The notes beneath the pieces were generated by a model, which was not told where the DNA came from, did no database searches, and saw only the letters and a list, made by a program, of their open reading frames with translations. Source: Hyaloraphidium curvatum SAG 235-1 (taxonomy: Eukaryota; Fungi; Monoblepharomycota). From it: DNA of 64,000 nucleotides. A program made the translations under genes and the position numbers. Below are positions 1 to 57,035 of the stretch, piece after piece (the first letter of the stretch is position 1; each line of letters starts with the position of its first letter). The stretch lies in NCBI GenBank assembly GCA_025558095.1, contig JAIVFI010000015.1, forward strand, positions 372,001 through 436,000, written 5' to 3'.

Positions 1-2
1 GG

Positions 3-3000
3 CGTGCGTGGTGCTACATCTGGAACCTCCGCTGGACGGGCCAAATGCTGTACTTTACGGCGAGTTGGCGGCCGGCAGAAGAAACCCACCGCCTTTCTGA
101 CACGTTGCTGACCGACAGCACGATTTCAACCCCACGGAGCACCTACCCTACCGCATCCCGCCGGGCGCCGCCATTGACCAGCTGCCGACGGAGCAGGCGA
201 TCTCGCTCAGGCAGATCAAGGAGCCGATCACGCCGAGGGTGGGAGGCCAAAGCACAACTGCAAGACGGCGCCAGATCTTTCGCCCATACGGATGGCGAGA
301 CTTCGACACCCTGCGCGATCTGCTCGTGACCGTTAAGGCTGTCGCCGATAACGACAAAGAGCGATTGGCCGTTGATCAGCTCACCCACCTGATCGTGGCC
401 GTTGGGACCAATATTGACGCGTTCGTAGGGACGGCTGGTGTTGTGTGCCCTCACTGACTTGCCCTCCTTTGCCAGCCCCAACTCGGCCTCCTTCCTCCTC
501 AAGAAGCCCAGAACATGCTTCGTGAGGTGTCTCCAGGACTACTCCGTGCCGCGGCAGGTCATGGTGCCCATCCTTTATCTGGTCGAGAAGGCTGGAATCC
601 ACATGGGCGTGGAGTTTGGCGGGCAAGTCGAGGTGACACACGAGTGCCAGTACGTCGGCCGCGTGCTCTCGGCGAACGGTTCTGACACACCGGCCCAATA
701 GCCTTTGCGACGATCCGCTATCAACCGAAACTGCCAAAAATGCTCGTCTCGCGGTTCCCCTCACCGCCGACCAGGCGCTTGATCTCCACCACGCACGCAA
801 CCACTTTTGGGTTGTTGCGGATGGCGAGGTGGCCCGGAAGGTCAAGGCGGCCGCCTCGGACCTCGTGCTGTGGTCAAGCGAGAACGTCGGACCCTGGCGG
901 GGCGCGCTTCGGGCTCGGAACATTGACGTGCCCACGGGCGATGGCGCGGCAATCCTGGGCTTTCGGAATATGAGCAGTTTGATGCTCGCCCCACTGCGCG
1001 CTGGGTACGACGTGGACTGGCTCCGGAGCGGCACGTGGTGGGTTTCGGCTCGAACGGCGCATGGTCGATGGATGATTCTCAACAGGAAGGCGCCCGACAG
1101 GCAAGTTCTCGGGGAACGCATCGTCACCTCGTTCGCCAGCAAGAGGGCACTTTCCCACGATGCCCGCCTTTTCCCCGCACTGCACGATACGGAGGCATGG
1201 CTCAAGGTTCGCCAAATCGCGCAAAGCTTCGGTGAGGCCGTCTCCACCGCGCACATTGCCGACCGCCTCACCAGGCACCTCAGACGGATGGTTCAAGGAC
1301 TCTGACAAGATCACGTTCGCCGCGGCCCTCGACACGACCCCCCTCCTGCCCATCACCGACATCCCTCGCCGACCGACCAGCGCCGGCGCAGGCAACATTG
1401 CAGCCACCCTGGGGCAACCTTCTTCGGCGGGATCGACGGAGCCTACCAAGGAGCACGTGGTCGTGGAATCTTCCCCGGGCCCGGCCACCGCGAGCCCCGG
1501 TCCTGCGGCGCGCAGCCGAGTAGCGGCGACCCCGGATCCCGCAAGCCCAACCCTGTCGGGTTCACCGAGCGCCCAGGAGTGCTGGACTGAGGACGGCGCC
1601 TGCGCCGCCTGCGGAGTCTCGAAGGTGCTGGTCGGCAAGACAAGGCATCGCAGCTTCTGCACCGAAAAGGTGCGGCGCTTCGTCTCCGCCACGATGCGCG
1701 CGGGAAGGCCGAGCAGCGACTACGAGGCGAAGGTCAGGTCAGCTCTTTCATGTCAGTTGCTTTACTCACGCTGCGTTTACTCCAGATCTCTACCACGGCC
1801 CACGGCAGGCCGGTGCAGTCGGCTGTTTTGGACCACCTGCGGCACATCCTAGTCCGCGAGTTCGAGGCCGAGGCACACACCGAGAAGCTCCGCAAGGAGC
1901 TGGGCCTCGCTATGGGAATGTTTCAAAGGCACTGGGTCGGGGAGCGCAGCTACGTCCTGGACACGGCCACCGTGTCCAGAATGGCCACCATGGGTACGAG
2001 CGAGTCCGGTGCCGTGCGGTTCGTCACTCATTCCCGATATTCTGCGGCAGTCGCGAGTCGGCTACAGCTTGGCCATCGCGAGAGCAGGTATCAGACGGGG
2101 GCAGGCCTGACTGCCGGCGGCGACGAGTTCGCCGCAGACCGCAAGGCGACAGCGGTGGCCATGTACGCGTCGGTCAAGCGCGACTTTGTTCCGATGCTGA
2201 TGAGGGACGAGCGCGCATCGTACGAGGAACGACTGCTGAGCTCGGTGAGTTTCTGTGACGGTCATTAGCGCTCGCTGGCATTTAGCATCCATCTTGCAGG
2301 ACCTCAACTCTGTTGTTGGAGAGTTCATTCGCAACGCCAAGCGGCTGGCGATTTGGGAGACTCCCAAGGACATCCGCAAGCTTATTCGCGGCCAAGTTCA
2401 GAATGCCGGTGCCTTGTTCCCGACAAAGACCCAAAACCATGTCTGCCGCACAATCTGGGAATCGCTTTTCGACTTTACCGTCATCACGGCCTACCGTCTG
2501 GAACTCGGCGCAACGATCCTGCTGGGCAAGGTGAAACTGGCTGAGGCTGCGACAGCCCCGCGCGCCGCCGCAGGCGGAGGAACCGAGGCACAAGGCGGCC
2601 GCGCCAGCCGGAGGAAACGGCGCACGTACCACGAGGACAAGGACGATGAGGCGGAGAATGAAGCCGAAGCAGCGGCTGACCAAGCCGAATCGGATCTTGG
2701 TGGTGCCCAGCAGCCGGCCGCGCAGGCCGACGCCACCGCGGCTCCCCGCGTGTTCTCGGACGAACAAGTCGCCGCGGCCGAGCGAATTCGAGCGGGTATC
2801 TTGCGGTGCCTGGGTGGGGAGGAGATCGCGAGGAAGGTGTTCGAGGAGCTGAAAGGGATAGCGAGAGTTCAGGTCAGTTTCTGATCTGCAGCTCACCGCA
2901 GACCCCAGCGGGCCGCTGACATCACACCTGCAGTACCTGCCTGTTCCTCCCTGGCCGCTGCGGAGGGTATTGACGGAGGAGATCGTCGCCGGCTTGGCGG

Positions 3001-6000
3001 AGGGCTACTTCGAGAGACATGGGTACGAGGCTGCAGCGATCGCGGCGTTCGGGCCCATTGCAGTGAGTGACTTTCGCGAGCTGCGTTGGCCTTGGCTGCT
3101 AACGCCCCGTGTCCTCGGTAGACGCAGGAACGCGGGCGGCTGCAAGGGCTGACGGACGACCAGCTGCTGAACGAGATCGCCGATGAGCAAGCTCAAGAGG
3201 CAAGAACCGTCGATGCAAATTGATGGGGCCGCGATATAACGAGAGCATTCGCCCACAGACTATCGTCGACAAGTACAAAGACGACCGTGCGGCGTACGAG
3301 AAGGCCTATCAGCTGGCCATTCGCGGAGTTTCGGACGGCTTCAGGCAGCCGCGATATTGGTATCTCACGACGTTACAGAAGTACCCAGAGTTCTGCGAAC
3401 AGCACCGAGACGCCACGGAGCTTGCGGAGAAGGGCAAGATCGTGCCGCGCTGGGTGCCTACACAGAAGATGCAGCGGGCGGAGGTGAGCGACCCCAGTTT
3501 CGAAGCTCTCGGGTCTCACTCGGTGCGCAACTTCACCACCGACTCCAGGAAGGCGCGCAAGCTGCGGATGGGGAGCAACCGGCCGCGGAGCCCGACCAAG
3601 AGACCGACGAGCAAGGGGACGGGGAGGAGGAGGAGGACGAGGAGGAGATTGAAGATTTCGAGGAAGAGGACGCGGGCGGGGACGCCGCGGGGCAACCACA
3701 GGCACCGGATACCGGCGGTCCGGTGGGCGGCCACGCGGTGCCGGCGGCCGAGGGTGCCGAGGGCCGTGCTGCCGCGAGGAAACGCAAGTCCAAGTACGAC
3801 ATCAAGTGGAACCTCATCCACCTGGCCCGACACGCCATCGTCAAGGGCCTCGAGGAGGTCAACGAGGAGAGAAAGCCAGCGCTGGACGTCTACAAGGCCC
3901 AGTTCGACGAATACCGGAAGGCGCGCGAGGAGCGGGTAAAGCAGGCGGCAGAGGCTATGCCGCTCAGGAGTTCGGAAGGCTCTGCTGCTGGGGGTGGAGC
4001 GGCGTCGAGTGCGGCGTCGAACGAGCCACGCCGTTCGCAGCGCCTTTCGCAGCGTGTGATCGCCGGCGAGGACGGCGGGCCTGTCGGAATGGGCCCACTC
4101 GTGCCGATCGAAACGCAGGACGCAGGCGGTGGTGGTGCCTTCGACGAGCTCCGCTTCATGGAGCTTGCGGAAGAGCGCAAACGCGGGCGCAAGGCGCGCC
4201 GCACCGTCGAGCCGGCGGCCAGGGCGGCGGCTTCTTCTTCTGCACCTCCGCCGCAGTTGAAGAAGAACCTGTTCGAGCAGAAGTGGCGGGGCGACGACAA
4301 GCCGCCGGACAGCAAGCCGATCGAGGAGCTGCCGCGACCGAAGCGGCCGCTACGGATGATCAAGATCCCGCAACTGACCCCACTGGCCTCGCACCGCTTT
4401 GGATTCTACTTCCGCGAGGTCTCCGCCATATCCGACTTCCTGTGCAGGTGTGTTCGGATTTCCGGGACCGCGGTCACCTTCGGCTGACGATTTGTCTGCA
4501 ATCGCAGACTCAAGCTCGACCCGACTCGCTCTTCCTCCAAGACCGCCGCGCGCACTGCTTTCCTCGCGGACCGAGACTTTTACCTCGGCTGGATTTTCGA
4601 TCTCTCCGACTTCAGCCACCTGTTGCGCGGCTGCATCGTCCGGGACACTCCAACAATCATGCATTTCAATGGCCTGCAAACAAACGGAGTGGAGCTGCGG
4701 TTCATCTTGACGCGGGTCGAGTGGGTGCCGAAGTCGAAGCAGAAGAAGCTGGCGGAGGAACGGCTTCGAGAGGCCAAGAAGCGTGCTTCGGGGCTCACGG
4801 CGGCGGAGAGGAAGGACTTTGACAAACGGAAGCGGAAGCTCGACGAGGAGCTCGACGAGGAGGAGAGGAAAGAGTTCGGACGGCTCTCGGGTAGGTGTCA
4901 CTTACGTCGTCGACGCTGTCAGGCTCCTTGACTTGACTCGCACCTCAGACCGGATTCTCAGCTCGCTACCGCGGAAGCTGCTCGAGTTCGAGGACCTTCT
5001 TCAGGAACCCTTTATCTTGGCCACGGATCCCGGGAACAAGGCCATCACGACGTCGGTCGCCATCATCTCCAAGCAGCACTTCGAAAGGATCCTCGAGATG
5101 GTCAAGCTGCAGCTCGACGATCCGAAAAGACCAGGCAGCAAGCTCGTGCCTAACCCGTTCAACACCGCCATCACCGTCATCCAGCCCAACGGGACGCGGT
5201 TCAAGTACACCTTCTCCTACAAGTACGAGAACGGCCTGATCAAGAGCTGGGACCTGATCCCGTCCAAGAGCCTCAACATCGAGCCGCACGTCCACAACGG
5301 CCGGCTTTACACGCGGCAGCACAAGTACTCGTCCGACAAGTCGCCGGAAGCCTGCGTGCCGAAGCCGCAGTACCTCTCGACGCCCGAATCCATCAAGGGC
5401 AACTGCCCGGAGGAAAAGCAGAGGCAGCGGCGGAGGGCACCGGGCGAGATCGCGCCATGCGATTTGAGCGATGAGCGCTGTCAGGAGTTGTTCGAGGAGC
5501 GGCGGGCCAAGTTCCTCAAGGTCAGCGGCAAAACGCAGGAGGAGGCGGAGAAGATCTGGGACCGCCTCGGGATGCTTCCCGGGGCCGCGCGGTACGAGCT
5601 CGAGCGCATGTGTCCGAGCGACCACATCCGGCGCGCAAAGGGAGTTCCGAAGAACAACAAGATGCGAGAGGGCTGGCGGAAAGAGGCAGGAGTTCTGAAG
5701 GTGAGCATGATCGTGCCTTTTCGCGAGATCACGACTCATCGAGTCCGTCTTCACGAACAGGAGGCTTGTTTCTGGGACGCGGAAAAGAAGGACTACGTGA
5801 CGCGCGCCGCCTCCGTGGAGGAATGGTCGTCGAAGCTGCCGACGCCTCGTACCAGCGATCCGGACCTGTTCCAGAGACATGCACGCTGCATGTTGCAGAC
5901 GCTTCCCGGCCTGCTGGGTAGGTTCAGCAACCCGCGCGACATTCAGCAGCTTCTGACACCGTTCTCTTGCGCCTCAGCACACTACGGACGGTATCGCGAA

Positions 6001-6755
6001 CGGTGAGGAGTCCGCTTGCCAATCGCTTTGGTCATTCTGCTCACCCTCGGACCTCAACAGGCAGCTGCGCATGACCAGCAAACGCCGCGGGGACCACACG
6101 ATGGCCAAGATGGCGGAGGTCTACTTTGCACCGGACGTGCTCGTGCGGCCGTACGATCCTGGCGGCGGCGGCGGCGGGGACGTGATCGTGGCGAGCGACA
6201 ACACGGCGTGGATCTCTTTTCAGAGTATTGCTGGGACCGTACTACCGTACGGCGACGCGAACTTTTCGACCAGCATCCGGGGAAGACCTCCCACTCCGAA
6301 CCGTCAGGTGAGTTCGCGAGCACACGAGGACCGCGAGATTGCTGACCTTCTGCCGACCACAGCTCGTCAAATCTCTTCGGCGCCTCGAAGAGGAGGGCAG
6401 GGACCCGCGCAAGAACCAGCACCTGGCCGAATGGCGCAAGGATCTGTGCCTCTCGTTTGTCCGCGAGTTCCGAACTTCGCGGATGTGCAGGGAGTGCCAC
6501 ATCACCGTGTGCAAGCAGGCCAAGGGAAGGGAGTGCGGGTTGTTGCAGAACAACAAGACGATCTGGGGTGTTAAATGTGAGCATCAATGTGGCCGCGGAC
6601 AGGGCCGACGAGCTGACCGATGATTTGCAGACTGCGAGCTCTGCCACGTGATGTGGAGCAGGGACATTAACGCAGCTTTCAACATCCTCTGGATCTTCTT
6701 GTTTACCATCCTCAACGAGGGAGACAGGCCCGAGGGATTTTTCGTTGAGGTTTAG
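3..6755 (+). CDS. Fanzor: Giant intron-containing Fanzor (eukaryotic TnpB/Cas12-related RNA-guided RuvC endonuclease); 5' end outside the window; about 1,900 aa in-window after splicing
   Basis: Predicted introns: 60-118 (GC-AG), 421-475, 650-701, 1232-1283, 1733-1785, 2245-2299, 2873-2933, 3063-3121, 3200-3258 (GC-AG, least certain), 3484-3548, 4448-4507, 4891-4948, 5701-5760, 5918-5977, 6003-6060, 6308-6362, 6577-6630. Each preserves frame. The spliced C-terminal half has Fanzor-type motifs in order: QLTPLASHRFGFYF; WIFDL...HFNGLQTNGVELRF (TDG-like); RuvC-I ILATDPG (D 5026-5028); LLAHYGRYRERQLR; YGDANFSTSIRGRPPTPNRQLVKSL; RuvC-II VREFRTSRMCREC (E 6465-6467); WGVKYCELCH; RuvC-III WSRDINAAFNI (D 6663-6665); DRPEGF; stop TAG 6753-6755. 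The family call is much firmer than the continuity of the N-terminal exons. Confidence 0.88.
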
Positions 6756-6775
6756 AGTGGGGACGTTTAGAGTGG
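6750..6775 (+). repeat. 11-bp direct repeat GTTTAGAGTGG x2 spanning the Fanzor stop codon
   Basis: Exact copies at 6750-6760 and 6765-6775, separated by GGAC. Confidence 0.85.
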
Positions 6776-6905
6776 CTGTATGCCTCGCGACGTTAGTCGC
6801 TTTCTTGAGTAGTAGTAGAAGCCAGTGCAGGCGGCCGCAGCACATTGAGGAGACACCCCGGGCCCGGAGCTCCGCGCATCGTGCCTTCTGCGCACCGGCG
6901 TCTCT
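6756..6905 (+). ncRNA. Candidate Fanzor omega-RNA scaffold (boundaries uncertain)
   Basis: Lies directly 3' of the Fanzor stop. Stems seen: GTGGC 6772-6776/GCCGC 6834-6838; TGCCT 6781-6785/AGGCG 6829-6833; hairpin GCGAC-GTTA-GTCGC 6787-6800; GAGAC 6850-6854/GTCTC 6900-6904 enclosing GCGCA 6874-6878/TGCGC 6889-6893. The position is consistent with known Fanzor/TnpB loci. Short stems can arise by chance in GC-rich DNA. Confidence 0.4.
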
Positions 6906-6986
6906 GATAGGCGGCTGTTCGGGGCGCATCGGCAGGGTAGGTGTGTTGCGGGGCGCGGCGTATGCCCGCTGACCCCTGCCCGCCAG

Positions 6987-7962
6987 ATGGACGACGACTC
7001 GGCCGAGAACCGCTGGCGCAAGGCGGCCAACGCGCGGTGGGAGCGGTTCAAGAAGACGCAGGCGTCGGGCGACAAGAAGGCGCGCGCGCTGGCCACCGCG
7101 AACAAGCGCGGCGCCGCCGCCCCCGCCGCGCCGTACCCCGGCGTCAAGCGCGACGCGCGCATCCGCAAGCCCGTCGTGCTGCCGCAGCAGGGCGGCTTCG
7201 CGCCGCAGCCGCCCAAGCCGCGCAAGCAGGGCGGCGACGAAGACAACCCGTGGCGCCGCGCCGCAAACGCACGCTGGGAGAAGCACAGGCTGCAGTCGGG
7301 CGCGGGCACCCCCGCCCCGCAGCGGGCCCCGCGCGCCCCCGCAAAGCCCCGCGCGGCCCGCAAGGCGGACGATGCCGAGGCCGACGGCGGGCTGGCCGCC
7401 GTGTTCGACGACGAGACCATGGGCCTCGAGGGCGAGGAGCTGGAGACCTTCAAGAAGATGTGCGACTCGGTGCTGGCAAAGACAAACAGGCTGTCGGGCG
7501 ACTCGCGCAGGCTCATCAAGGAGTTCCTGGCCGGCCAGTACGGTGGGTGTCGCGGCGGGTGCCCGATTGGGAGCCACCGCTGACTCGCCGCCAGACGAGG
7601 AGATGGTCTCGGTCGAAAACATCATCCTCAACGACGAGATCGTGCCGCATCCCGACGAGCCCGGCAAGTACTGCCGCGAGACCCTCACCTTCGAGATGGA
7701 CTACCGCAAGGGCAAATGGCGGAAGCTGAAGCGCAGGTGGAAGCGCGCCATCCTGCAGCAGGAGCTCCAGGACGCGGGGATCCCCTACACGGACGCGGAC
7801 GCGGACGCCAAGGCCGAGGACGACGGGGCGGGCGCGGACGGCGCGGCAGGGGACGAGGACATGAACGGCGAGGGCGCCGGCGCCGACGGCGACGCAGGGG
7901 AGCAAGGGTTCGCGGGCGACGATTCGGCCGCCGGGGACGGTGAAAACGAGATGGACTCTTGA
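6987..7962 (+). CDS. Basic protein with a NELF-A-like C-terminal domain and a duplicated WRxAANARWE motif
   Basis: Exons 6987-7542 and 7595-7962 (intron GTGGGT..CTGAC..CAG). The spliced segment TNRLSGDSRRLIKEFLAGQY-DEEMVSVENIILNDE...TFEMDYRKGKWRKLKR resembles the NELF-A C-terminus as recalled (ANKVTRPEKALILGFMAG...VFEMNYATGQW). An apparent leader intron lies at 6937-6986. Confidence 0.6.
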
Positions 7963-51859: not shown

Positions 51860-52082
51860 GTTGGAGTGGCTATGGGGCGTGGGGAAGACGTAGCCCCAGT
51901 GGTCTGAACCGGGTCAGAACTCAGATGGACGGGATGGGGAGAGGGACAGTTTCACGTTGACCCGTTGTCCATTCCCTTGTGATGACAAGTCCCTAGATGA
52001 CCCCTCCGATCGTACCCAAGTATCCCCACACGCCAATAGACTCCCTATTGATACAGAATCGTAGCAACGATCCATTCCAACA
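51860..52082 (-). repeat. 3' LTR of copia family B (223 bp; lacks one terminal base)
   Basis: Identical to 57210-57432 by direct comparison. Confidence 0.95.
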
Positions 52083-52130
52083 CTCCCCCTCGTTGCAAGA
52101 TTCCCAAGAAGTGTCCAGAAATCCCCAAAG

Positions 52131-55100
52131 TTAGTCACGAATCTCTACAATTCCCATAAGTGCCCTGAAACGTTGAAACTTCTCCCTTGGTAGCTGTTTG
52201 GTGAGCAGATCCGCAAGCTGGTCCTCTGTGTTGATGTACTCCAGCTGTATCTCTCCACTATCAATTTTCTCCCTCACAAAATGGTACTGCACTCCAATGT
52301 GCTTGGTACGTTCATGAAAGACAGGATTCTGCGCCAGCTTGATAGCCCCCTCATTGTCCTCCTTGATGACTGTTGGCCCTTGCTGAGGAAATCCCAATTC
52401 CTCCAATAAACTCCTTAGCCACGCAACTTGACGTCCAGCATAAGATAGAGCCATGTACTCGGCCTCTGTTGTTGAAAGAGCCACCACTGGTTGCAGTTGC
52501 GACTTGTAGATGATAAGACCGTTCCCCATCATCACTACAACCCCAGTTGTTGACTTCCCAGTGTCAAGATCCCCAGCAAAACTGGCGTCTGCATATCCAT
52601 GCAATGCTTTGGTCATGTCCAGATTCGGATCCCTCTTGTAAACCAAGCCAAAGTCAGCTGTTCCCTTCAAGTATCTGGTTGTCTTCTTGACTTGCTCCAC
52701 TGCTTCACGAGTAGGTGCCATCCCATGACGGCTCTCCGTGATAATAGGTAAGGCAATGTCCGGCCTGGTGAAGTTCATAGCATACATCCAACTTCCCACC
52801 ATTGATCTGAACGGAAAACGTCCGATTTCCTGCTCCTCAGCAGCAGACAACTCCGTCTTCCGTTTCCTGAGCTTCACCCCAACGTCCATAGGTACAGAAA
52901 CTGCATTGCAAGTGTCCATTCCGAAGTCCTCCAAGGCTTTCTTGATGTAGTTGGACTGCTTGATTGTGATTGTTCCAGCCTTCTCGTCCTGCTTGATTTC
53001 CAAAGCCAGGAACTTTTTCATGCGACCCATGTAACGTATCTTAATCCGCTTTCCCAGCTCCTCAAGAAATGCAATCGTCCGTTTTTCGTCCGTTGAGCTA
53101 CATCCAAAGTCGTCCACATGAATAATCATCAAAAGAAACCAATCATCTTGCCGCAGAAAGTAGATGCAGTACTCCTTTGAGCAACGTATAAGCCCCATCT
53201 CCGTGAGTATCTCGTGCAGGTGTCTGTGCCAAGCACGTGCAGCTTGCACAAGTCCATAAACCGCAACTCCAGGTCGAATTACAGTAGGTCTTCCATCAGT
53301 AAACTCAGGTAAATCCATCCCTTGAGCTGGATACAAGTAAACTTCCTCGTTCTCCTGGAGCTTAGCCTGTAGAAATGCAGCATTTGCATCTGCCTGATGT
53401 ACAATCATGTTGTTCTGAGCAGATATCCAAAAGAAAAGCCGTACAGCAGCAGCAGAAGGTACAGGTGCAAAGGATTGACCAAAAGAAGATGGATCCTGCC
53501 AATCACCCCTTGCCACCCATCGAGCCTTGTAGTTTTCCTCCCCCACAATGCTGCCATCAGCTCCAGGTTTGAGGTCAAATACAAATTGGCTTCCAACCGC
53601 GAATTTTTCCTTGCCCTCAGGCAAGCCCATGATGTTGTACGCATCTCTGCTCTTGAAGTTGCCAATCTCACGTTCCATTGCCTTGGCCCACATCTCACGA
53701 TCCTCTGAACGCATTGCCTCTGCATAGTTCCGTGGTACACGTGCTCCAGTGCTTGCAGCAAAGATTCCATCCATGTGTGCCATGTCCTCCCAAGTTGGTA
53801 GGTGTCCCTGCCAGTCCAGGTGGTCCTGGACCTCCTCCATCAGGAAATTGATCGATTCCAGCGTGATCACGTTGATCTCCTTCTCGTTGCTCGTGTTGGG
53901 GGCTTTCCACCACTCCCCAGGAGGTCTTGGAGCTCTGCTGGATGACCTTGTAGGAAAAGGTATCTTGGAACCCGTTCCAGCCGCCCCAGCGCCTCCCTGA
54001 GCTCCGCTGCTTGATGAAGATGCTCCTCCAGGCTCCCCACGTTGGTCTGTGGCTTCCCTAGCCGCACGATCACCAGAAAGTTGCGATCCACCAACTGCCT
54101 TTCCTCCCCCTGGATCGCCACTTCCACTGCTCCCAGAGCCTCTTCCACGAGCCACCAGCTCGTCCTCACTTTCGCTCTGAGCTCGTTGATCGCGTGACAG
54201 ACGTAAATCCGCGCCTCGGCTGCCGGAACTTGAAGATTGATGTTGAGTACCTCCAACTTCCAGTCTTTGACCTCCTCCCCCGGCCTCCTGGCGCTCAGGT
54301 TGACGCTGCACACGGTCTCCCTGTGTCCCACGATGCTCCTGGTTGCCGTCGTCGATAGGATCTGCGGAACGGACCCGCCGTGGCGTCTCCGGTGACGCCT
54401 CCAATTCCTCAGGCTGCGCCGACTCCTCCACGGCAAGTCGACGGTTCAATACAGCGCTCGGGTCCGCGTCCTCAGGTAGTTTTTCGACCAAAACTCTGCT
54501 TTCCAGAACCCGCATGTAGCTCTTGAGCGTCTTGTTTGACCAGCGTTCCTCGAAAACGACATCACGTGAGTCAAAAATCCGCCCGGTCTCAAGATTCTGG
54601 ACCGTAAATGCCTTCGATCGCGAGCTCATTCCCAGGTAGCGGCATTGTACCGCCTTAGCATCCCATTTGCCGCGCTTATCCTTGTCGACGATCGCGTAAC
54701 ACGTTTCTCCGAAACGTCGGATGTGGCTAATGTTCGCCCGTCTCCCAGTCAGCAGTTGAAACGGCGTAGACCCTTTCTGCCACGTCTTTGTGTTCGGCAA
54801 ACGATTCCGTGTGTTGATGTGATGATGCAGTGCGTATCCCCATAACGACTTCGGCGCTTTCGAGTCGATCAGGATGGTCCGGGTCCCTTCCTCAGCCGTC
54901 CGGTTCCGCCGCTCAATGACTCCGTTCTGCGCAGGCCGATTCGTTACCGACGATTCCAACTTGATTCCCTCGTTCTTGCAGTACGCTTCGAGCCGTTTTG
55001 ACGAGAATTTACCTCCGGGATCGACCCGCATGCATCCGACCTTTAGGCTGAACTGGTTCTTCACCCACTCGGCAAAGTGCATCATCCAGTCCTCCGCCTC

Positions 55101-57035
55101 CGATTTGTGCTTCAATAGGAACGCAAACTCCGCAGAAGTGTACTCGTCGACTGCATGCAATGCCCAGCGTTCTCCATGCACCGTTGCAACGTCCGATTGT
55201 ATCAGGTCCCAGTGAGTCAGCTCAAACGGCCGCGAGACTTTCCGCTCCGACTCCGGATAGGGCAACTGATGCATCTTCCCCATCACGCACTCCTTACAGA
55301 AGTTGTTGAGGTTTCCAGCAAACACGTACTCCTCCAATCCATCCACAATCCCAGCCTGTTGAACCTTCCTGAGTGCCGCGATCGGGTAGTGCCCGCAGCG
55401 CCCATGCGCAATCTCCGCGCTCAAATCCCCTTCCTGAGCACTCAGCATGATCTGTTCGTCATGCTCGTTGAGGATTTCCGCGTTGAGATAGTAAACGTGA
55501 CGATCTATGCGGCAAGTGCCCCGCACGTCGCCGCCCTTGGTGATGGCCCCTCCATCCGGACCCAGAAGCGTGTAGTATCCCATCTGCCCTAGTCTCCCAA
55601 TCGAAATGAGCGTTGCAGGAAGATCTTTGATGAAAAGCACATCTTCCAGGGTGACGATGTCGCCAGAATTGGTGAGCTTGATCTTGAGCTTTCCGACTTC
55701 GATCGCACGCGCGATCCCTTTTCCCATTCGAACATCAACTGCATCGCACGGCTTGATGCCGTAGAGCAGTTCCCTGATTCCCGTCGCGTGCACGGACGCG
55801 CCGCTATCCCCCATCAGCCTGCCGCGCATCTCCTGGCCCGTCTTCGCCGCGTGCACGACGTGTTCCGGGGGTTTTTCGTATCCACCGTCCCCCATCGTCT
55901 CCCCATCGTTTCCCTCGATTCCGCCCTCCATCATGAACAGGAACGCGCCGAATCGATCTTCCAGATCGGGGAGATCGCCCAGGGTGAGCGTGTTCTGCTG
56001 CTCTCGTGCCGTTTTCCCATCGTCCTTCCTCCAGCACACGGCCTCGAGATGACCGTCCTTTCCGCACTTGTTGCAGGTTTTGTCACGATGGGTGCAGTCC
56101 TTCTTGACGTGTCCACCCTTCCCGCAGCAGAGGCACGTGATTCCCGAGCCGTTTTCGCCCTCCGCCGTGGCCTGCCGACCCCCGCGATTTCCGAATCCTC
56201 GCCCGCGACCCCTTGAACCCCCGCGGTCACCTCCATGGCCACCCCGTGATCCTCCGCGACCCCTGCCACGGTTTAGAGCGTACATCAACGTGTTTGGAGC
56301 GGGATTCACGGTTATGTTGGCTGCCCCAGGTGAGTACGTATCACCATTTTGCTCAGCTCGCTTGATCATAGTCTCCTCTTCCATCTCCATCCTCTTCTGA
56401 AGGTATGCAACGTTCAAGATAGGGTGTTTCTTCACTCCATTTTCAGTCTTCCACTCGTGTTTGGTCTGTGCTCCCAGCCAAATGCCGTCAATCTCGGCCC
56501 GGACTTGATCAAACTCAGGTAGGTCCTTCAGGACTTTCCTCCAGATGCTCATATCATCGTCATCTCCCTTCAGCTTTCCCAGTGCTTCAACTTCCATCTT
56601 TTTCTGCATGAAGCGGGTAAAATTCGGAGCCACCCGGTCGGTTTTGATGAACTCAAAGCTGTAGTACTGGACCTCGGCGTTCCCTTGCTGCGCCACATTT
56701 TCCGTCACGAAACGCTCCTCTAGGTAGTCCCAGATGTCCTTAGCAGTGTCCATCCTGCTGCAGATCCTTTTGAGACCAATAGAGAGTGATCCTACCAGGA
56801 TCCCTTGAGCTTTCTGGTCCTTCGTGTTCCAGGCTGACAAATCATCTTCCGTCTTTCCTCCCTGCCCTACCACGGGCTTTGCCACCTTTCCAGTCACAAT
56901 TTGCCAGTCACTCTCCCTCTGGAGCTTGGCCTTGATGTCAATTAACCAATCCTGGTAATTGGTTTGTGATCCGGTTTCCTCGAGCTTGGCCCCCCCAAAC
57001 AATGCCACACGGGTTCCTCCGACCGAAATCTCCAT
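52131..57035 (-). CDS. Copia Gag-Pol polyprotein, 1634 aa
   Basis: Two CCHC knuckles; protease DSGAS; HGRCGH/CKEC; integrase D-D-E (HWDLI, VDPGG, GVIERRNRT); RT QADANAAFL and HVDDF; RNase H YADASFA, TEAEY, EDN, QLADLLTK. Confidence 0.96.
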   Translation of the reverse strand: MEISVGGTRVALFGGAKLEETGSQTNYQDWLIDIKAKLQRESDWQIVTGKVAKPVVGQGGKTEDDLSAWNTKDQKAQGILVGSLSIGLKRICSRMDTAKDIWDYLEERFVTENVAQQGNAEVQYYSFEFIKTDRVAPNFTRFMQKKMEVEALGKLKGDDDDMSIWRKVLKDLPEFDQVRAEIDGIWLGAQTKHEWKTENGVKKHPILNVAYLQKRMEMEEETMIKRAEQNGDTYSPGAANITVNPAPNTLMYALNRGRGRGGSRGGHGGDRGGSRGRGRGFGNRGGRQATAEGENGSGITCLCCGKGGHVKKDCTHRDKTCNKCGKDGHLEAVCWRKDDGKTAREQQNTLTLGDLPDLEDRFGAFLFMMEGGIEGNDGETMGDGGYEKPPEHVVHAAKTGQEMRGRLMGDSGASVHATGIRELLYGIKPCDAVDVRMGKGIARAIEVGKLKIKLTNSGDIVTLEDVLFIKDLPATLISIGRLGQMGYYTLLGPDGGAITKGGDVRGTCRIDRHVYYLNAEILNEHDEQIMLSAQEGDLSAEIAHGRCGHYPIAALRKVQQAGIVDGLEEYVFAGNLNNFCKECVMGKMHQLPYPESERKVSRPFELTHWDLIQSDVATVHGERWALHAVDEYTSAEFAFLLKHKSEAEDWMMHFAEWVKNQFSLKVGCMRVDPGGKFSSKRLEAYCKNEGIKLESSVTNRPAQNGVIERRNRTAEEGTRTILIDSKAPKSLWGYALHHHINTRNRLPNTKTWQKGSTPFQLLTGRRANISHIRRFGETCYAIVDKDKRGKWDAKAVQCRYLGMSSRSKAFTVQNLETGRIFDSRDVVFEERWSNKTLKSYMRVLESRVLVEKLPEDADPSAVLNRRLAVEESAQPEELEASPETPRRVRSADPIDDGNQEHRGTQGDRVQRQPERQEAGGGGQRLEVGGTQHQSSSSGSRGADLRLSRDQRAQSESEDELVARGRGSGSSGSGDPGGGKAVGGSQLSGDRAAREATDQRGEPGGASSSSSGAQGGAGAAGTGSKIPFPTRSSSRAPRPPGEWWKAPNTSNEKEINVITLESINFLMEEVQDHLDWQGHLPTWEDMAHMDGIFAASTGARVPRNYAEAMRSEDREMWAKAMEREIGNFKSRDAYNIMGLPEGKEKFAVGSQFVFDLKPGADGSIVGEENYKARWVARGDWQDPSSFGQSFAPVPSAAAVRLFFWISAQNNMIVHQADANAAFLQAKLQENEEVYLYPAQGMDLPEFTDGRPTVIRPGVAVYGLVQAARAWHRHLHEILTEMGLIRCSKEYCIYFLRQDDWFLLMIIHVDDFGCSSTDEKRTIAFLEELGKRIKIRYMGRMKKFLALEIKQDEKAGTITIKQSNYIKKALEDFGMDTCNAVSVPMDVGVKLRKRKTELSAAEEQEIGRFPFRSMVGSWMYAMNFTRPDIALPIITESRHGMAPTREAVEQVKKTTRYLKGTADFGLVYKRDPNLDMTKALHGYADASFAGDLDTGKSTTGVVVMMGNGLIIYKSQLQPVVALSTTEAEYMALSYAGRQVAWLRSLLEELGFPQQGPTVIKEDNEGAIKLAQNPVFHERTKHIGVQYHFVREKIDSGEIQLEYINTEDQLADLLTKQLPREKFQRFRALMGIVEIRD

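Follow-up and report, generated by a model that had tools for sequence, protein, structure and literature searches.

To our knowledge, the Fanzors described so far are compact enzymes of some 600 residues, and what they do for the transposons that carry them has yet to be tested. Fanzor1 (SpuFz1, GtFz1 and PpFz1; PMC10432273, PMC11423790) shares with the locus described here a DPG motif in RuvC-I, a glycine at the canonical RuvC-II glutamate position, a relocated glutamate before a C4 zinc finger, an RD motif in RuvC-III, a short conserved non-coding stretch from the stop codon to the right end, introns at host density and a chytrid-grade fungal host. In contrast, most Fanzor1 proteins have 600-700 aa (PMC11423790) and the present one about 3,400, with 402 residues between the catalytic Asp and Glu and a RuvC insertion that exceeds the FRI domain of PpFz1 (roughly 100 aa), while the element carrying it has neither terminal inverted repeats nor a conserved TAM beside its left end. 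Pairings of Mariner with Fanzor and of IS630 with TnpB are already known; neither so large a size nor the asymmetry of the ends nor the distal motif is described in the literature consulted. In fact, a literature search to which most subscription papers were closed returned no account of a Fanzor in Hyaloraphidium or in giant transposons.

Hyaloraphidium curvatum is a freshwater, early-diverging, chytrid-grade fungus. The window analysed here, 64,000 nucleotides of its DNA (G000:C15:372001-436000), was studied together with the 31.9-Mb genome of 55 contigs, which was searched; sites upstream of the window are given negative numbers (C15 position minus 372000). The locus probably encodes a Fanzor1-like nuclease that has a very large extension at its N-terminus and travels in a transposon, one moved by IS630-type transposases and sited by a module of its own. 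What is unusual here goes beyond the original prediction: a protein of about 3,400 aa, an element headed by an IS630-type transposase gene and a motif at the target site.

Gene model and genomic setting

The original prediction had placed a spliced Fanzor/TnpB-like nuclease at 3-6755. The gene is there, but this interval covers only about half of it, since the 3' half alone falls inside the window and the start lies about 5 kb upstream. The features of the locus, all on the + strand, are the following.

C15 359029-359037, +, target-site motif CAAGGGNTT in host DNA
from C15 359059, +, left end of the element
C15 359110-360078 (-12890 to -11922), +, truncated IS630/Tc1-like transposase ORF, 322 aa
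C15 360079-366783, +, internal module
from C15 366784, +, upstream exons, about residues 1-1518, the first three uncertain
1-6821, +, in-window part of the element
1-4447, +, exons of the N-terminal extension, about residues 1519-2769, 38-70% identical to the C23 paralogue
60-118, 421-475, 650-701 and 1038-1100, +, predicted introns (those from 1232 on are seen in RNA)
4508-4890, +, exon before RuvC-I with putative WED-region strands, 70% identical to C23
4949-5700, +, exon with the RuvC-I Asp (codon 5026, residue 2924), followed by a long insertion
5761-5917, 5978-6002 and 6061-6307, +, three exons ending in YGDANF, Gly at 6251, with RNA joints
6363-6576, +, exon with the relocated catalytic Glu (codon 6465, residue 3326) and the first CxxC of the zinc finger
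6631-6755, +, last exon with the second CxxC, the RuvC-III Asp (codon 6663, residue 3374) and the stop codon
6769-6821, +, conserved right end with two small hairpins, a candidate scaffold of the omega-RNA
6822-6840, +, right flank, predicted guide segment starting GCCA(GT); an RNA contig crosses the end

The claim that the three catalytic residues are joined in one spliced frame holds: the codons are GAT at 5026 (in ILATDPG), GAG at 6465 (in VREFRTSRMCREC) and GAC at 6663 (in SRDINAAFN), the YGDA glycine codon lies at 6251, the stop codon is 6753-6755, and the exon-by-exon translation is free of stops over 1101-6755. Between 1232 and 6630 there are 15 introns of 52-65 nt each, of which 13 appear as joints in the contigs of run X1 (1232-1283 through 6003-6060), one of these being the single GC-AG intron (3200-3258); run X1, whose contigs are spliced, is therefore RNA. 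For introns 6308-6362 and 6577-6630, the RNA contigs have loose ends whose 10-15 letters are those of the neighbouring exon. Thus all three junctions on which the original prediction had staked its splicing are used, the first (6003-6060) by an RNA joint and the other two by these exon-matching ends. The contigs were compared over 1101-7000 and are uninformative on expression levels and transcript ends.

Further upstream, an RNA contig of 7,533 nt extends 3,355 nt 5' of 1101 and stays in frame and stop-free to 5916; judged by its length, it reaches about -2730 to -2850, so that about 2,700 codons are spanned by RNA. Splice-site modelling extends the open frame back to an ATG at -5216, giving 31 exons and 3,403 aa, stop-free throughout. 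The first three exons are uncertain because the C23 paralogue is frameshifted there, and the size is therefore given as about 3,100-3,400 aa, of which about 2,700 are RNA-spanned. The NCBI model of the locus (DFJ74DRAFT_94870, 456 aa) has identical 3' junctions, although it may share its RNA data source with run X1, and it starts after the RuvC-I Asp. An intact, expressed Fanzor of about 3,400 residues represents a size class that annotation, and published spacing patterns as well, would miss.

An RNA contig (6688-6936 and 6987 onward) leads from the last Fanzor exon across the right end and is spliced (6937-6986) into the downstream host gene, so the element end may overlap the 5' leader of that gene or be read through. 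Two divergent genes of the host flank the insertion. The neighbourhood consists of ordinary host genes (cytochrome b5-like, chaperonin, kinase, glucosidase), which rules out a viral context. Elsewhere in the window, 52001-57000 has a lower GC content (0.49-0.57) and a strongly negative GC skew.

Fanzor identity and the giant extension

Several lines agree with the original identification as a Fanzor/TnpB protein: the motif order, the relocated Glu, a match to PF07282, matches in the ESM Atlas and the retention of D/G/E/D in a metagenome homologue. Fanzors are defined by a Glu that has moved to a position six residues ahead of the zinc finger (PMC13565253, 10.1101/2023.08.09.552727). The DPG, Glu-minus-six and RDxxxxxN signature is present as ATDPG, E-FRTSRM-C and RDINAAFN, and the order D ... 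[TS][TS]xx-C4 zinc finger ... RD (PMC3627910) as D2924, T3329-S, C3333 and RD3374. The YGDA glycine, equated with the canonical RuvC-II Glu position by its motif rather than by alignment to a TnpB structure, stands 53 residues before the Glu (about 45 in the definition) and is kept in L054, P0002 and the sister-family copy. The D-to-E spacing of 402 residues lies outside the 125-275 or 120-280 of published patterns; it is due to a large insertion, likewise present in the metagenome homologue L054, and could mean that the RuvC fold is impaired. In the exon 4508-4890, LQTNGVELRF, within the putative WED-region strands, may resemble the TDG motif of Fanzor1.

The queries in the searches were the NCBI annotated proteins and single exons. 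The locus protein (P0006) scored 26.9 bits against Pfam PF07282 (cut-off 26.3), and the nearest ESM Atlas clusters of the C23 protein were eukaryotic and giant-virus PF07282 proteins, with feature scores of 0.95-0.96. AlphaFold2 modelling of a paralogue (P0007), from an alignment of only 10 rows, gave a pLDDT of 42.8 and no Foldseek match, and PDB sequence searches gave no relevant match. Searches for homologues brought up H. curvatum proteins and two metagenome fragments and nothing else, so no reference Fanzor sequences, and scans of metagenome and viral contigs yielded none. The homologue on metagenome contig L054 (34-60% identity) conserves D/G/E/D, has matching 3' intron positions and carries two similar hairpins 3' of its stop codon, so the lineage is not confined to the H. 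curvatum strain. As for the type, the linked enzyme is a DDE transposase, an association with which the Fanzor1 label would be consistent; the frames scanned gave no resolvase match, as the serine recombinase of Fanzor2/IS607 would, and no Rep/helicase gene of a Helitron-Fanzor, the internal module being scanned in part. Additional Fanzor families are indicated by PF07282 matches above cut-off at G000:C2:397554, C2:426655 and C5:336026.

At about 3,100-3,400 aa, the protein is outside the Fanzor1 norm and about five times the usual size. The extension, some 2,700 N-terminal residues, was compared exon by exon with Pfam and PHROGs and in one Atlas search, and no family was found; neither XPG nor OTU domains were detected in it with Pfam and PHROGs. 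The only near-full-length paralogue, C23, has a nonsense codon and frameshifts, while exons 2 onward keep their order in it and almost all intron positions recur. Over 3,050 codons, dN/dS against C23 was 0.33 (5' part), 0.26 (middle) and 0.28 (core): by this sequence comparison, the protein is under purifying selection, along its extension too. The last two exons, at 90-92%, belong to the best-conserved part, and the catalytic residues and four cysteines are retained across the paralogues and the distant homologue. With an intact triad, purifying selection and transcription, nuclease activity is plausible.

The IS630-headed element, its ends and its target site

The element measures 19,763 bp (G000:C15:359059-378821), with the Fanzor gene at its right end and a transposase ORF that begins 51 bp inside a left end common to C21 and C12. 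The transposase has the HTH and DDE domains of the IS630/Tc1/mariner group; in the C15 copy it is C-terminally truncated, keeping the DDE motifs and lacking about 40 residues conserved in all relatives. A transposase-Fanzor fusion was rejected for this copy, since the transposase stops 11.9 kb before the window with no open spliced path between. In C23, an IS630 gene lies upstream of the Fanzor in the same orientation, whereas a deletion copy in C12 joins the left end directly to the Fanzor 3' part. Internal segments are shared, as a mosaic, with other IS630-headed elements, and 34 IS630 transposase matches were found genome-wide. Moreover, ten copies of a sister family have a PF07282 match, mostly 7.8 kb 3' of the transposase, one Fanzor end having been read directly. 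Between L005:3700-7200 and C23:306.7-310.2 kb, identity is 87-98% for the most part; it drops to 55-65% in the 6 kb that follow and recovers in the final 500 bp, a sign that copies have recently undergone gene conversion or exchanged modules.

Other copies show further variation. Two young IS630 families (copies 98-100% identical), on C3, C4, C5, C6, C7, C11, C15, C16, C25, C28, C35 and C36, have transposase frames of about 800-850 aa, with about 450 extra residues, and variable left junctions (TA, TC, small deletions near the end). At G000:C15:545.1-546.6 kb, a sister-family Fanzor end abuts a 5'-truncated C23-type transposase, and its left flank closes with a 13-mer that the C23 left end has as well; this may be an insertion of one element into another, with about 95 bp deleted. 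Within the element, at L005:1460-1605, lies a short repeat (about 130 bp) with some 15 further occurrences in the genome.

A right end of 53-62 nt, about 94% identical, is common to four loci, C15, C23, C12 and C29, and their homology stops sharply at 6821. The copies differ in extent, C23 being near full length, C12 the 3' 1.7 kb and C29 the 62 nt alone. Among the four, folding z-scores were not significant and there was neither significant covariation nor an Rfam match, although the second hairpin, being invariant across copies, can give no covariation signal. A terminal intron at the right end was discarded, no RNA joint being found. The solo right end (G000:C29:418170-418231) is identical to that of C12, has no left end within 15 kb and is crossed by an RNA contig that continues 255 nt into the flank; in this it is similar to the 'ghost' omega-RNA loci of Spizellomyces, which have no protein.

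The two ends do not match each other. Terminal inverted repeats are absent, a 9-bp subterminal inverted match being all that was found. There is no TA target duplication, since the left junctions have CA or TA and the right flanks start with GC, CA, AC or GT, and no long duplication was found; GCCA(GT), at both junctions of the C15 copy only, is a candidate target duplication of 4-6 bp. Outside the left end, CAAGGGNTT lies 21 bp away (start 30 nt upstream) in all three left ends of the C15-element family, in flanks otherwise unrelated, against 4 occurrences in a background of 194 kb; the count is in-sample. In the sister family a related motif is exact in 5 of 10 flanks, 25-26 bp upstream and always at -34, with one extra N permitted, a relaxation chosen after viewing those flanks; its background rate was 0.00115, and flanks shifted by 100-300 nt gave 0. 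A third family has GCGTCGATC in place of CAAGGGNTT (5/5, in-sample, offsets -31 to -16). The motif is independent of transposase relatedness, families 62% identical differing in it and families 40% identical sharing it.

Insertion at a fixed offset and in one orientation from a short motif, the pattern of CRISPR-associated transposons (CASTs), is thus found in 3/3 and 5/10 cases, with none in shifted controls. Pairing of a guide with its target received no such backing: the four known right flanks, compared with the 45 nt before 21 left junctions, matched no better than random 12-mers, right ends of sister families and of the C13 and C21 copies lying outside this small sample. The homing model also expects a TAM-like sequence directly at the left end, where nothing is conserved beyond (T/C)A. 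As a separate observation, the reverse complement of the left end (L011:7029-7080) contains GCAAGG, as does the flank motif, a 6-bp match that could be chance. End-like targets occur for some bacterial IS elements, and an end-like target sequence is a further possibility for the motif.

Possible mechanisms and comparison with known systems

In the reading we consider probable, the last 600-900 residues would form a complex with an omega-RNA that comprises the right end and about 15-20 nt of flank, and this complex would cut DNA matching that flank, i.e. the element-free allele, which would help to keep or restore the insertion. Such cutting of element-free alleles has been proposed for TnpB and Fanzor (PMC13565253). 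IS630-type transposases would move the element, probably supplied by sister elements since that of the C15 copy is truncated, and the site motif would most likely be read by an element-encoded DNA-binding module, either the extension or a transposase appendage, rather than by guide pairing. The guide RNA, the cleavage and the motif recognition are all inferred, the nuclease part from characterised Fanzors.

A different role for the giant complex, directing integration itself, must be weighed, and is judged unlikely. The motif would then be the TAM (or TAM plus seed), recognised with or without guide pairing, and the IS630-type insertion would take place at or near the cut or footprint, 21-26 bp downstream of a family-specific motif. 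SpuFz1 cuts the target strand 20-21 nt after the TAM (PMC10432273), and the agreement of the 21-bp offset with this distance keeps such an explanation a candidate. It also agrees with a motif that follows the family and not the transposase, with the absence of TA duplication and terminal repeats, with sister families carrying transposase and Fanzor 7.8 kb apart within one element and, weakly, with the C29 solo right end, which lacks a left end and has GGTTG at the same offset (4/9 positions). Nevertheless, 0/4 right flanks match the 21 left-junction sequences above random 12-mers, the motif of 9-10 nt is longer than the reported TAMs of 3-5 nt, and the triad is intact, unlike that of transposon-guiding effectors such as Cas12k, which are nuclease-dead (PMC10691335). 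A protein that no longer cuts, a Fanzor-derived scaffold or regulator with selection acting on the extension and on RNA/DNA binding, while a host factor tethers the transposase at the motif, seems less likely still. In its favour, some 80% of the protein has no relation to nucleases, a large insertion splits RuvC, the element sits between divergent genes, where host factors bind, and no in vitro cleavage was seen with an algal Fanzor that contains introns (PMC10530073). This would leave unexplained why every catalytic residue and cysteine is kept across paralogues and the distant homologue, and why the last two exons are so well conserved; moreover, with two motifs in three element families, tethering would need two host factors.

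The most improbable reading, to which we give very little credit, is that the Fanzor is an ordinary protein of 450-900 aa, as annotated, and the upstream exons are separate genes. The NCBI models of three copies (413-593 aa) would fit it, as would the fact that RNA joints were placed from 1101 onwards only. It is opposed by the single RNA contig that runs in frame, without a stop, from upstream of 1101 to 5916, by the 31 exons without a stop codon and by the conservation of each exon after the first, in order, in C23.

From the fixed-offset motif a TAM or binding site can be predicted concretely, so that it becomes directly testable whether Fanzors serve homing only or also choose insertion sites. 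If site choice were true, it would offer a eukaryotic route to the targeted insertion of large DNA; if integration were directed by the Fanzor, this would be natural Fanzor-directed DNA insertion, a eukaryotic parallel to CASTs.

Tn7/TnsD also inserts in one orientation and at a set distance from a short motif. The type V-K CAST (Cas12k) shares this pattern, and there, as in the present element, a Cas12/TnpB-family protein travels with a DDE transposase; the likeness is one of insertion pattern only, since here no TnsC/TniQ was found, the triad is intact and there is no guide-target match. In general architecture, the element resembles the Mariner/Tc1-Fanzor elements (PGv-1, PUl-1; PMC3627910) and the DDE-6 branch of IS630-TnpB (PMC10691335), with a DDE transposase of the IS630/Tc1/mariner group on the left, TnpB/Fanzor on the right and chimeric cargo between them. 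Those elements have symmetric ends, with TA duplications in the Mariner ones, whereas that of H. curvatum is 19.8 kb long, has asymmetric ends with GCCA(GT) repeated at the junctions, and is preceded by a motif 21 bp outside the left end.
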